Origin: Octopus sinensis
Lineage: Eukaryota
Reading direction: 5' to 3'
Length of the DNA stretch: 64,000 nucleotides
Assembly: GCF_006345805.1 (NCBI RefSeq)
Contig: NC_043021.1
Span: 10,230,001-10,294,000, forward strand
The position numbers were made by a program, and so were the translations under genes. The stretch's first letter is position 1, and each line of letters starts with the position of its first letter. The notes under the pieces are model-generated. The model was not told the DNA's origin and did not search any database. It worked only from the letters and a program-made list of their open reading frames with translations. Positions 10,529 to 52,040 of this stretch are shown here, piece after piece.

Positions 10529-13500
10529 TTACAGGTTACTATTGATCCAGTCTCGGAAATATCCGACATCGCTGAAAGCACTGACTTCATTATCACATTT
10601 ATTTCCGAAGGATGTTACTCCTGCCAAAACCATTTGACCATTTGAGCTTGGACAATAAAGTGGACCACCAGAGTCACCCTGAAATAAAAAACACAAACAA
10701 TATAATTTTATATTTAATGAAATTATTAGATATTGACTAAAGTTAGAAGTTCTGTGTGAATATTTCAGAAAATGAATCATTTGTTCAATGTATTTTACAA
10801 AGAAATTTACTTGTAACGATAAGGAGTTCTAAATTCAAACACGCACATACACCCATACACACACACACACCACACACACCACACACACACACACACACAC
10901 ACACACACACACACACACACACACACACACACACACATACACACACACAGAGGCTTACACACACATCTACGTATCAATCTGTTTGTCTATTTGTCTCTGT
11001 CCGTCCATCTGTCCAGTCATCTATCTATCTATCTATCTATCTATCTATCTATCTATCTATCTATCTATCTATCTATCTATCTATCTATCTATCTATCTAT
11101 CTATCTATTTATCTATCTATCTATCTATCTATCTATCTATCTATCTATCTATCTATCCGTTTGTATGTCTGTTTGACTCTCTACATATACATACATATAT
11201 ATATATATATATATATATATATATATAAAACTTCTTCCACAAAATGGTTAGTAACATCCTCAAAATATTTCATAATTTTTTTTACAATTAATTTTTTAAA
11301 AAATTCACTTTTACACTTCAAAACGTCATTCTCATAGATTTTCATATATCTCTCTCTATATAAACGGCAGTTTGTCTGTGCGTGTTTCTGTGTGTCTGTT
11401 TGCTTGTACCCTCACCCTGACCACGGCTTTCAACCGATTCTGATGAAACTTGACACACACATAGCCCAATGTCATAATTCAAAACTAACGCAGCGAAAAT
11501 TTTGAAAAGTTCCCCCAGTTCTGAAAAAGAACGATAAATTCGACATGGGGTCGAGAATCAGGAATACGAACCACAAACTGTCTAGGGGACGCAACTCCAC
11601 CTTTTTTAAATCTCAAAAAAAAATTTACCATCATTTTTTTCCATTTTTTTGCTATTTTTTGGCTATAACTCTCTAAAAATGCTATATAGTTATTTCCCTT
11701 ACAAACCTGAGCAACGCCGGGCGATACTGCTAGTATATATATAATTGTACTGTATATTTATCATTTAAAGGGATATATCTGTTAGATATCACTCTAGGTA
11801 TGCAGTAATCCCTGACTATCGCAGGTTTTACGTTCCTCAACCTCCCACAGAATTAATGAAAATCTTAAAAAAATATATAAATGCATTTCGGCCGCAGAAA
11901 TCCGGCTATACTGAGGAGTCCGCGATATAAATTTACATATATTAGCCAGGAAAATCCGCGATGTACTGAGTGCACGACAGGTGAACCGCGATGTACTGAG
12001 CGCACGATAGGGGAACCGTGATATGGCTTGGGATTACTGTATATGCTATAAAATCAATAAAACATACCTGGCAAGTAGATGCTCCACCTTGTCTGAAATC
12101 TCCGGCACAGAGAACTCCATCAGCAATTCGCATCCTTGATCTTCTTGTACATACATCATGGGGAATAGCTGGAAGAGCCACTTTGTATAATTCGTCAGGA
12201 CTGTTTCCTTTAACTGAAAATAACACATTTGAATGATGATTAATATCGATTGACGATGATTAAATGGAGATGATAGGAACATCAGATGAAAATTTCATGA
12301 TACTTACATTGGAAATTTCCCCATCCAGCAGCGATACATCTTCGGGTACCAAATGTTTCTCCTTTACTGGCCAATTGTGCAAACTGGACACATCTACCTT
12401 CACGGACTGGCTCGCTCAATGTCAGTATGGCAATGTCGTTCTCTGTACGGGGAAAACATACGCATATGTTAGACATACATGTATACTAGCGATGCATATA
12501 TGTAGTGTCATTATGTATATACAGATATATATGATGGATACACATCGAATAGAGATGCGTGCAGTATAGACATAAATATTTGATGACCATGTATGTATGT
12601 ATGTAAGTATGTATGTATAAGTGGTTGTGAGCTCGATTCTCGGAACGGGCTGTGTTTTGAGCAAAACGTTTTTTTCCACCTTTCTCCAGTCCACTCGGTT
12701 AGAGAACTGGGTTGTGACGTCACTGGTGCCAAACTGTATCGGCCTTTGCCTTTTCCTTGGGCAACATCGGAGCTATGGAGAGGGGAGAGTGGACTTACAC
12801 CTTGGAGGGGAACTTACTCGTTGCTATCTCTTGATTATGACCGAAAGGGGTCTTTACCATATATATTAAGAAAGAGGGAGAGAGAGAGAGAGAGAGAGAG
12901 AGAGAGAGAGAGAGAGAGAGAGAGAGAGAGAGAGAGAGAGAGAGAGAGAGAGAGAGAGAGAGAGAGAGAGCGAGCATACGTTCTTTTCTTACTTTATGCG
13001 TTTCTGCTCAAAGAGTTTTGTTTCGTCATACTGGGCACCGCCGAATAGCATCCCTTTTTCACTGGCCATTCTCATGTGATTAGCTTTTGGTGGATGTGGT
13101 AGTTCGATTCTGCTGCCCTCTTTTGGGTTATTTTCCGTGATACGGGTTTATCTCAGATCTTGTACTGCAGAAGAACGTAAAGAACTCTCCGGGTTTTTCG
13201 CAGGATATTAAATAGCTGTGGGCCATTGCATCCCAAGCTCTTGCAGTGCCTATGTATATCATTGCATATGTCTCCTATTTTCGCTCTAGAGAGTAGAATC
13301 TTCCAGTCTCCCTTAGTAACTCAGGCATTTCAGGGTTGTAGTCTTCCTAGCACAGCTGAACTGCCTGAAGTTAAGCCATTAATTTCACACTGTGGGGTGA
13401 CTATAGTTGAGAGCAGTTGTCCAGATGGCAGAGGACAAATGCACTCTGTAACGATCAGAATAAGTTCCTGGTCTTTTGTTGTGAAAGTGTTTAGAGTCCA

Positions 13501-49600: not shown

Positions 49601-52040
49601 TATTATTATTATTTTATTATTATTATTATTATTATATTACTATTATTATTATTATTATTATTATTATTATTATTATTATTATTATTATTATTACTATTAT
49701 ATTATATTATTTATTATTATTATTATTATTATTATTATTATTATATAAATGTAAATATAGTAATCCCTACAATTGTTTCGATTCAAAGCTAAAAGCAATA
49801 ACAAATTTATTAAAATTCAAATTTTGGAAATATTTCGAGTAAAAATCTCATCCGGCAAAGCAGGAAAAAATTACACATTAGAAGCTTGAGATCCCTATAA
49901 GAGGAACTTGCTTCCTTGTATTGGATTATATATATATATATATATATATAATATATATATATATATATATATATATATATATATATGTGTGTGTGTGTGG
50001 TGTGTGTGTGTGTGTGTGTGTGTTGTGTGTGTGTGTGTGTGTGTGTATGTGTGTGTATGCATACATGCATACAAACACTCTCACACATATAATGTTATTT
50101 CTGGCTATCATATATACTTATGTCTATATTGCACGAATGTCTATTATATGTATATACATCATATATATCTGTATAGATCTATTGAAACATATATTCATGA
50201 CCAGCATATGCGTATGTTTTACCCTTACAGAGAACGATATTGCCATCTTGACTTTGAGCGACCCAGTCCGTGAAGGTAGATGTGTCCAGTTTGCACAATT
50301 GGCCAGTAAAGGAGAAACATTTGGTACCCGAAGATGTATCGCTGCAGGATGGGGAGATTTCCAATGTAAGTATCATGAAATTTCCATCAGATGTTCCTAT
50401 CATCTCGATTTAATCACCGTCAATCGATATTAATCATCATTCAAATGTGTTATTTTCAGTTAAAGGAAACAGTCCTGACGAATTATACAAAGTGGCTCTT
50501 CCAGCTATTCCCCATGATGTATGTACACAAAGGTCAACGATGCGAATTGCTGAGGGAGTTCTCTGTGCCGGAGATTTCAGACAAGGTGGAGCATCTACTT
50601 GCCAGGTATGTGATTTTGATATTATAGAATATATACCTCTAGTCAGGTGGCGAGCTGGCAGAATCGTTAGCACCCGGACGAAATGTTTTGTGGTATTACG
50701 TCCGCCGCTGCGTTCTGAGTTCAAATTCCGCCGAGGTCGACTTTGCCTTTCATCCTTTCGGGTTCAATAAAATTAAGTACGAGTTACACACTGGGGTCGA
50801 TTTAATCGACTTAACTTAATCTGTTTGTCCTTGTTTGTTCCTTCTATGTTTAGCCCTTGTGGGCAATAAAGAAATAAGAATATATACCTCTAGTGATATC
50901 TAACCGATATATCCCTTAAATGATAAAATACATTTTGCTGCAGATGGCTGGAATATGTCTCCCCGCATTCGATATAAACAAGAATACATTTTGCACCAAA
51001 AAGCCAATATGAGAGTTTCTCTCATGGCATCTACCACAGTATAGCCTGTTCTAACAGAACATCCACTTTTAAGATGGGATAAATTATTCCCTCACTGTAT
51101 TAATATTGCCCCCCCCCCCGTCGCTAATACACACACACATACGCGCATACACACACGCATTATTTATGTGTATGTGTGTGCATGTCTGTATTGATGCAAG
51201 TATATCGGATCCACAAAAGCTGAAACTGGCGAAAAGAAAACTATTCAACTTTACAAGTAAAGTTCTCTATTGAATAATATATTAAACAAATGATTAATTT
51301 TGTGAACACACTGCTCCTCTGTATTGACCACACTGTCAAATGTTGTTATTCGCCGCTGGTCTTAAGGAGCTTCCAAATCTTTCTTTATTACGCTTTTCTT
51401 TCCATCTTGCAAATATCTTCCAAAATCGTTTTACTAAATTATTTCTTTCCATCTTCTCCAAAATCGTTTTACTAAATTATCTCCCCATTGCCGTTAGACG
51501 GCCCTCCCAAGTTACCTTTCCGATCTCTTGGTAACCATTCGACAATTGCATGGGTTCACCTATTGCTTGTGAGCCTTGCAACATGTCCGGCCCTGTGAAA
51601 CTTGTGGTTCTCATATTCTACGATCGAATCCTTCAATCCGCTTTGTTCCCGAATTACCACCTTTAAGTTGTCTAGCTTTGATTTGAGCACATCTTTTATG
51701 GAGGCTAACACCTTCCATCGTGTCGTTATTTTCCTCGAGATTTCTATCTCCTTGTCTCGACGCATATCAACTTTTTAGTTCGAGCTGACGTACTCCTTTA
51801 CGACCTCTATTTCATCGTTTTCCACCTCTGTTTGGCCTTGTGCTGCGTTTTCACTAAATATAAATTTATATTGTTTGTGTTTTTTTCAGGGTGACTCTGG
51901 TGGTCCACTTTATTGTCCAAGCTCAAATGGTCAAATGGTCTTAGCTGGTGTAACATCCTTCGGACGTAATTGTGACCATAGAAATCAGCGCTTTCAGCGA
52001 TGTCGGATATTTCCGAGACTGGATCCAGAGTAATCTGTAA
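46682..52040 (+). pseudogene. Copy H: full six-exon protease gene with a +1 insertion in exon 6 (exons 46682-46730, 46985-47144, 47945-48072, 50231-50365, 50460-50605, 51890-52040)
   Basis: tgtgaccatagaa vs tgtgacatagaa in G. The frame shifts after Cys220 to DHRNQRFQRCRIFPRLDPE*, losing the C-terminal strand and helix. The catalytic triad is intact. Could be a consensus error. Confidence 0.65.
48880..49745. repeat. ~870-bp degenerate (ATT)n microsatellite in copy H intron 3
   Basis: Direct reading. Confidence 0.95.

Follow-up and report, generated by a model that had tools for sequence, protein, structure and literature searches.

Promoters and gene bodies of two head-to-head serine protease pairs in Octopus sinensis have conflicting ancestries

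The stretch of DNA analysed here (the window) comprises 64,000 nucleotides of Octopus sinensis (NCBI RefSeq assembly GCF_006345805.1, contig NC_043021.1, positions 10,230,001 to 10,294,000). It lies in the middle of an approximately 130-kb tandem cluster of cephalopod chymotrypsin-like S1 protease ('SP1') genes, which is carried by a 28.9-Mb scaffold and extends beyond the window, from about -33 kb to +36 kb. Five genes in the window, B, C, E, G and H, have six coding exons apiece, as established with tblastn and spliced exon coordinates, and each specifies an S1 protease of 255 amino acids. Their membership of Peptidase S1 is evident from matches to the Pfam Trypsin family (PF00089; E = 1e-47 and 5e-46) and from the His, Asp and Ser motifs TAAHC, NDIAIL and GDSGGP in the translations. 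The nearest named relatives are SP1 proteins from octopus salivary-gland studies, which points indirectly to venom or digestive enzymes that would be expressed in, and secreted from, the posterior salivary gland, a putative assignment (PMC7656900). The cluster belongs to the same gene family as the cephalopod-specific, lineage-specific expansion of posterior-salivary-gland serine proteases that is already known (PMC7656900).

B (10529..15750, minus strand) and C (18862..23362, plus strand) form one divergent, head-to-head pair, with 3112 bp from ATG to ATG, and G (39104..43644, minus strand) and H (46682..52040, plus strand) form another, with 3038 bp; the distances agree with the approximately 3.1 and 3.0 kb of a prediction made earlier from the sequence alone (the original prediction). 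That prediction held that the spacers and the bodies of the two pairs imply different ancestries, and that each pair is a palindrome that homogenises its own arms while the spacer keeps the older history. E (28429..33162, minus strand) is a third, unpaired copy. The bodies are of two types, alpha (B, C and E) and beta (G and H), which differ by 16-17% in intron 2 and cannot be aligned in introns 3 and 5. The grouping of B with C (motif IVGGSE) and of G with H (IVDGSP) was foreseen correctly, in that the motifs are as claimed and both the body sites and approximately unbiased (AU) tests agree, and the repeat array that G and H were said to share in intron 3 was found as a (TCA/GAT)n array. The 255-codon open reading frame (ORF) of B is intact and is spliced from exons at 15750-15702, 15005-14846, 14250-14123, 12442-12308, 12213-12068 and 10678-10529; that of E is likewise intact.

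The spacer at 15688-18916 is an inverted match of 46744-43590 (93.7% identical with gaps, 96-99% in gap-free windows), as had been predicted. Each spacer is made of two promoter modules, U1 of about 2 kb and U2 of about 1.1 kb. U1 of B (15751..17768, minus strand) is found also upstream of E (33163-35179) and of H (44713-46681) and is orthologous to the sequence upstream of the O. bimaculoides gene P0001; U2 of C (17769..18861, plus strand) recurs upstream of G (43645-44712) and has its orthologue in front of the O. bimaculoides gene X. The second spacer (43645..46681) thus runs from U2 on the G side to U1 on the H side and is the first spacer inverted, with U1 joining B and H and U2 joining C and G. 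Between -800 and -300, the U1 copies of B, E and H are 96-99% identical to one another, 90-92% identical to that of P0001 and 74% identical to U2, and the U2 copies of C and G are 94% identical to each other and 89-90% identical to that of X. Note that a tree of the proximal promoter sorts the copies by species rather than by U type, and the assignment to U1 or U2 therefore rests on the -800 to -300 interval and on distal sequence. An element resembling a short interspersed nuclear element (SINE), which has many copies genome-wide, lies in the first spacer (17576-17980), where it belongs to U2, and is mirrored in the second (44514-44890), again in accord with the prediction. U1 also holds a degenerate foldback (17162-17538; 34573-34949 in the U1 of E) with 155-nt arms that are 81% complementary, and the match to O. 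bimaculoides stops mid-way through it. We considered this foldback as the centre of an old palindrome and dropped the idea because the element also occurs in the unpaired U1 of E.

The promoters and the bodies of the two pairs have conflicting ancestries, brought about by recombination between neighbouring gene copies. Upstream, about 430 informative sites separate (B,E,H) from (C,G); from exon 2 to exon 4, about 450 sites separate (B,C,E) from (G,H); and from exon 4/5 to the 3' flank, 178 sites separate (B,C) from (E,G,H). Within blocks there are almost no conflicting parsimony-informative sites, and the discordant block trees have 100% support. In AU tests, the upstream region rejects (B,C) with p = 4e-4 and (G,H) with p = 3e-35, and the gene body rejects (B,H) with p = 1e-69 and (C,G) with p = 8e-51. 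The spacer and body trees are therefore not congruent, and the conflict on which the original prediction was built stands. Adjacent segments yield significantly different trees, as is characteristic of non-allelic recombination or interlocus conversion. In addition, all four combinations of promoter and body are present, namely U1-alpha (B and E), U2-alpha (C), U2-beta (G) and U1-beta (H); because these four combinations exist, as in a four-gamete test, recombination must have taken place.

The points at which ancestry changes could be placed within narrow intervals. In C, the change from U2 to the alpha lineage falls at 18713..18922 (plus strand), an interval that includes exon 1, and C is of alpha type from exon 1 to its tail; in H, the change from U1 to the beta lineage falls in the same interval (46533..46745, plus strand), and H has a beta body and a beta tail followed by a flanking segment, w. 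The final CG|BEH (U-type) site lies at -149 (C18713, H46533) and the earliest body-type site at about +60 (C18922, H46737-46745), and the junctions of C and H both lie inside one 209-bp interval around exon 1. G has U2, a beta body and a beta tail. The unpaired gene E is a mosaic of another kind: its U1 goes with B and H, its body goes with B and C (alpha from exon 1 to exon 4), and from exon 5 through intron 5 to the tail, with a w/y flank, it goes with the beta genes G and H. Its alpha-to-beta junction (29853..30024, minus strand) lies in exon 4, where the GH|BCE sites end at E30024 and the BC|EGH sites begin at E29853. Junctions recur in the most conserved segments, that is, from about -150 to exon 1, at the edge between intron 1 and exon 2, and in exon 4. 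Note that a first tree of the body, in which E was nested in C, was overruled by counts of body sites fixed in both O. sinensis and O. vulgaris (E|BC 22, B|CE 8, C|BE 6), according to which B and C are sisters.

For comparison with O. vulgaris, which is dated to have split from O. sinensis 2.5 million years ago, we used 55 kb (OX597838.1:20501521-20556705, joined from three loci) of an assembly made independently from Oxford Nanopore Technologies (ONT), Illumina and Omni-C data. These 55 kb are collinear with positions 4804-61756 of the window at 96-98% identity, with both pairs, E and two gene fragments, D and F, included. The arrangement is therefore no assembly mirror, the outcome that the original prediction had named as fatal to it. 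In O. vulgaris, each of the five genes has an intact ORF of 255 codons. In O. sinensis, one-base length changes break the frame in exon 3 of C (20256-20279), exon 3 of G (42373-42395) and exon 6 of H (51968-51986); the probable cause is base errors in the O. sinensis assembly, an older one made from long reads, with recent pseudogenisation a less probable alternative.

O. bimaculoides provides the polarity. At the positions of B and C it has a mixed pair, P0001 (U1, alpha body, alpha tail) and X (U2, beta body); P0001 joins (B,C,E) and X joins (G,H) in trees, each at 100/99. Because O. bimaculoides has U1-alpha and U2-beta, we take B and E (U1-alpha) and G (U2-beta) to have kept the ancestral linkage and C and H to be the recombinant copies. 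The only available donors for the alpha tail of C and the beta body of H are their own pair partners.

The arms of the pairs are B/C 10037-15140 versus 23854-19321 and G/H 38965-44299 versus 52180-45993, around spacers of about 3.1 kb. Across the block 9680-15052 versus 19410-25317, B and C differ by 1.2-1.8%, or about 1.65% overall (42 of 2541 sites); the B/C arms as a whole differ by 1.2-2.3%, and by up to 4-6% in intron 5, and thus fall short of 99% identity. The G/H arms differ in a patchy manner, from 1.5% (intron 2) to 7.3% (intron 3). The divergence of the B/C block is significantly below that of the spacers (3.3-5%) and that between gene A, near the start of the window, and fragment D (4.9%), and the block must therefore have been homogenised after the duplication. 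Consistent with this, B and C have derived states in common that set them apart from E as well as from the outgroup (at the 22 fixed E|BC sites mentioned above). In quartets of O. sinensis and O. vulgaris copies, however, 30 sites support orthology and 3 support concerted change for B/C, and for G/H the counts are 77 and 5, plus 2 crossed sites. Because the arm differences are common to both species, the homogenisation mostly predates the species split. It is real but modest, mostly old, and has been slow since before that split. After the split, the arms yield one candidate conversion tract, from H to G (40161..40453, minus strand; 290-700 bp), in which G of O. sinensis has the derived states of H at 7 sites at which G of O. 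vulgaris is E-like, and a few scattered sites; the tract may be an artefact of short-read polishing. Thus, of the proposal that each palindrome homogenises its own arms, the part that concerns the B/C block (about 1.7% versus 3.3-5% for the spacers) is borne out, whereas the homogenisation is mostly old and exchange reaches across the whole cluster.

This wider exchange is seen in several places and is not confined to pair partners, as the mosaic E, a transfer from gene Q to B and one from H to the promoter of E make clear. In B, a tract of 810 bp (15052..15860, minus strand), from about -110 through exon 1 and all of intron 1 and including a SINE-like insert (15168-15591), is 95-100% identical (15860-15052) to gene Q, which lies 40 kb away on the opposite strand. 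The Q-type tract also resembles Y, the O. bimaculoides gene at the position of Q, and C and E keep the P0001-type (alpha) intron 1; B is thus U1, then Q-type exon 1 and intron 1, then alpha body and alpha tail. The original prediction had placed an abrupt end of B/C identity near 15050/19420, just upstream of exon 2. That boundary exists: discordant fixed sites reach as far as B15064/C19398, and clean sites begin at B15052/C19410. What ends there, however, is the Q-to-B tract and not an arm-to-arm tract. Lineage-specific tracts that differ between the sister species, the mark of interlocus conversion, are also present: the promoters of E and H are the same in O. sinensis (0 differences), E of O. 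vulgaris has 23 private sites there, and in O. vulgaris a 46-bp tract is common to B and E. P, the head-to-head partner of Q, and Q itself are separate lineages through intron 3 (54-80% identical) yet 94-99% identical from exon 4 outwards, 3' flank included. O. bimaculoides has exchanges of its own: P0001 and Y are 97-98% identical across exon 6 and the final part of intron 5, the exon 3 and exon 6 peptides of a further gene, W, are identical to those of P0001, and between P0001 and X the promoters are 96% identical. As a smaller observation, codon 9 of H (exon 1, 46682-46730) encodes V in O. sinensis, the state of C and E, and F in O. vulgaris, the state of G. This exon 1 hot spot has thus undergone either a mutation or a further minor exchange specific to one species.

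The flanks on the 3' side accompany the bodies. Downstream of B lies block z (9680..10035), mirrored downstream of C, with 1.7% difference, by block z' (24962..25317), the outer end of the homogenised B/C block. Directly after z' comes D (25315..26526, minus strand), a cut-down A-like fragment of the exon 3 region that mirrors A 2807-4026, and then follow y (26604..27280), a beta-type distal 3' flank, w, and the beta tail of E. This last series mirrors the tail of H, w, a 2.65-kb insert and y' (55361..56036), the distal flank of H, where homology stops in a SINE-like copy. Fragment F (35180..38939, minus strand) consists of A-like fragments (A 3617-6497) between U1 of E and the 3' end of G. 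That z' and D stand behind C, and w and y behind H and the tail of E, is the signature of a crossover rather than of an internal conversion patch; a conversion patch would keep the distal flank of the recipient, which disfavours conversion of whole arms. Divergence values fall into classes. The oldest class holds A/D (4.9%, 59/1202), y/y' (5.2%) and the two spacers (3.3-5%; 3.85%, 59/1532, on the U1 side); next come D/F (2.8%), the B/E bodies (2.2-2.7%), the tails of E and G (about 3%) and U1 of B/E (2.4%; U1 of B/H and E/H differ by 3.3% and 4.1%); and the B/C block is younger. The middle class is in keeping with a later origin of E and F, through an event whose junction lies in exon 4. For scale, orthologues of O. 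sinensis and O. vulgaris differ by about 1%.

The genes of the cluster are modular mosaics that arose by non-allelic homologous recombination. The mosaic itself, the intervals that hold the junctions, the linkage in the outgroup, the occurrence in two species and the relative ages are shown by the data. From them we infer an order and type of rearrangements, with tandem duplication, an inversion at exon 1, a spacer flip and later exchanges, to which we assign a probability of about one half. The ancestral unit would have been the mixed head-to-head pair that survives in O. bimaculoides, U1-alpha facing U2-beta. After the split from O. bimaculoides, about 23 kb reaching from A (intron 2, from 2807) to block y past the beta gene would have been duplicated in tandem, at an age corresponding to about 3.3-5% divergence. 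In copy 1 the beta gene, and in copy 2 the alpha gene, were inverted paralogues, and a single reciprocal exchange between them would have caused an inversion, with its crossover inside the 209 bp around exon 1. This would have yielded at once C (U2|alpha with z' and D) and a U1|beta gene with w and y, and would have turned both pairs into same-type pairs. Recombination between the now-identical arms of one spacer could next have flipped it, which would account for the inverted spacers and for G as U2|beta and H as U1|beta. An unequal exchange in exon 4 may have given rise to E (U1, alpha, beta tail) and F, with deletions afterwards. (A deletion mediated by a repeat of w, z, D and F at the G/F junction was rejected, as the copies are in inverted orientation.) Later conversions would include the long B/C block, patches in G/H, the 810 bp from Q to B, and, in O. 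sinensis, the transfer from H to the E promoter (only there) and a short tract from H to G; conversion tracts as such are directly visible in the cluster. An inversion of the tandem duplicate predicts exactly the observed order of z', D, y, w and the tail of E, which supports the crossover scheme. For the main discordance, reciprocal exchange at exon 1 of the duplicated units is a better explanation than conversion limited to the arms of the palindromes.

Several points weigh against this history. It requires a spacer flip and three deletions that have left no independent trace, and the G/H and E/H tail divergences (1.9-3.3%) are below the proposed age of the duplication, so that further conversion must be invoked. 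The coinciding junctions of C and H could instead mark a recombination hot spot, given that the Q tract of B starts nearby. The divergence estimates use a long-read assembly with base errors, of which the three one-base length changes are examples. Finally, the O. bimaculoides sequence downstream of X, where the ancestral w/y flank and any further pairs would lie, is a run of N (the locus begins with 3.7 kb of N); a candidate neighbour, P0015, sits 10 Mb away and gave no extension past X.

The original prediction would have the mixed pair duplicated in inverted orientation, followed by long arm-to-arm conversion, from beta to alpha in C and from alpha to beta in H. The polarity of the outgroup agrees with such a history, the partners are the sole local donors of the alpha tail of C and the beta body of H, the spacers are older than the B/C arms, the cluster shows demonstrable conversion activity, and the inverted spacers follow with no extra flip. 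The tracts, however, would have to be at least 7 kb in C and at least 9 kb in H, would pass through introns 3 and 5, where alpha and beta do not align, and would end in non-homologous sequence. Moreover, the original beta flank of C (w and y in plus orientation) and the original alpha flank of H (z and A-like sequence) are absent, with the flanks fitting the new bodies instead; the divergence of the G/H arms (2.5-5%) is not clearly below that of the spacers; and D, F and E are left unexplained. We therefore regard this history as unlikely, although it deserves more weight than the two that follow.

In the converse scheme, alpha/alpha and beta/beta palindromes would be the older state and a 3.2-kb spacer would have been copied later between them in inverted form. 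This would account for spacers that are 96-99% identical next to introns that differ by 17-25% between alpha and beta, and the flanking arms would offer homology in either orientation. It is very improbable, given that the O. bimaculoides pair is mixed, with U1 on alpha and U2 on beta, that neither the B/C nor the G/H arms exceed the spacers in age, and that the mirrored flanks z'/D and y/w would go unexplained. An artefact, in which each pair would owe one of its arms to a fold-back mirror or to haplotype collapse, might be entertained because base errors occur in the older, long-read-based assembly of O. sinensis (PMC10700109). The arms, though, differ by 1.7-5%, with different indels and repeats and with asymmetric spacers, 30 B/C and 77 G/H arm differences are common to both species, and the collinear ONT/Omni-C assembly of O. 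vulgaris refutes an artefact, to which we give practically no credence.

A more general idea, which we put forward tentatively and consider doubtful as a whole, is that the head-to-head pairs (P.Q, R.A, B.C and G.H) are themselves the evolving unit. Exchange at two to three conserved exons would re-deal promoters, bodies and tails, and partners would be homogenised inwards from their outer ends, in P.Q over the part beyond exon 4 and in B.C and G.H over the part beyond about exon 1. Should U1 and U2 drive different expression, the swaps would amount to a built-in re-wiring of which enzyme variant is expressed where. If this were true, the locus would be a palindrome-with-conversion system outside sex chromosomes, in a mollusc, measurable between species 2.5 million years apart.

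The likeness to mammalian sex-chromosome palindromes (P1-P8 of the Y, and those of the X), which are kept by arm-to-arm conversion (PMC8600007, PMC8327919, bioRxiv 10.1101/800185), fared poorly. As in those palindromes, inverted arms bear genes around a unique spacer, the spacer can flip, and there is some arm-to-arm conversion (the B/C block and, as a candidate, the H-to-G tract). The mammalian arms, however, are longer than 8-10 kb and more than 99% identical, whereas the octopus arms are about 5.5 kb and 95-98% identical. Their differences are common to both species (30 versus 3 sites and 77 versus 5), which is not the pattern of sustained concerted evolution, and the locus is a tandem enzyme-gene cluster that exchanges sequence with copies outside the pair. 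Because its arms are only 95-98% identical and their differences are cross-species, the octopus locus fails the defining tests of palindromes kept by conversion. Parallels are also found in tandem families with interlocus conversion and unequal crossing-over, such as globins, opsins, CYP21/C4 and amylase. With these the cluster has in common mosaic paralogues, discordant segment trees, the four combinations of promoter and body, junctions in conserved exons, and chimeras (E); it differs in that the repeat unit is a head-to-head pair, with contributions from both inversion and conversion among inverted copies. When inverted repeats cross over, the intervening DNA is inverted and the distal parts are swapped, as in the inversions between inverted paralogous repeats of factor VIII (int22h) and the FLNA-EMD flip. 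The exon 1 exchange and the spacer flip proposed here would use the same mechanism, except that the octopus repeats are the genes themselves and the products are two intact genes with swapped promoters. The mechanism is an ordinary one of a known kind, and recombination between gene copies is well known in general; it is documented here in detail for this cluster. In the literature searched, we found no description of the cluster's architecture, head-to-head pairs or recombination history, and nothing relevant on gene conversion, concerted evolution or palindromes in this protease family.

The cluster offers a resolved case, in two species and polarised by an outgroup, of how the octopus venom or digestive protease expansion is assembled: its raw material is not only duplication and point mutation but also the swapping of promoter, body and tail modules between paralogues. 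It follows that gene trees of these proteases do not record the history of duplication and that orthology calls between octopus species are wrong segment by segment. The locus is also a tractable site for measuring rates of non-allelic exchange in a mollusc.

Other genes and fragments complete the map. Upstream of the window lies the P.Q pair (P minus, Q plus, head-to-head, with ATGs at window -27904 and -24466), and at its start lies the R.A pair (R minus, A plus, head-to-head, with ATGs at -3347 and -963). A (plus strand) is partial in the window, its exons 1 and 2 lying just before the window start, and gene I (minus strand) is also partial in it. Loose fragments of exon 5 and exon 6 occur upstream as well (scaffold positions 10197000-10230000, window -33000..0). 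The gene models now available for the two species are in part chimeras or truncated, as is the case for several of the public models P0127 and P0126 of O. sinensis and P0024, P0131 and P0132 of O. vulgaris: P0127 fuses exons 2-6 of B to an exon 1 foreign to B, P0131 fuses G-type exons to exon 6 of E, and P0024 (C) begins with translated antisense sequence.

Repeats are frequent in the window. A Pfam scan of ORFs in alpha intron 3 and in the insert of beta intron 5 gave no match, which leaves the RTE label given to the latter unconfirmed. Many copies of one SINE-like family (1-346, 4274-4686, 15168-15591, 26604-26956, 27287-27757, 55685-56096 and 59699-60117), 80-92% identical to one another and about 70% identical to the spacer SINE, are present; they occupy several points where homology breaks off, among them the ends of y and y', and may have seeded rearrangements. 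Right behind exon 1, C (18918-19182) and E (about 32842-33106) have in intron 1 a 265-bp foldback insert that resembles a miniature inverted-repeat transposable element, with 124-nt arms at 90%; it is common to C and E and absent from B, G, H and P0001 of O. bimaculoides. Intron 3 of H contains an 869-bp (TAT)n array (48876-49744), shorter in O. vulgaris and related to an array at 58693-58850, and the G+C content is 18.6% over 48-50 kb. Lastly, F contains a perfect hairpin (36481-37323) with 416-nt arms that are 100% complementary and 11 nt apart. It is absent from the corresponding site in O. vulgaris and belongs to a very young repeat of about 490 bp with well above 100 copies at 96-100% identity on many scaffolds, often in tandem or inverted arrays.

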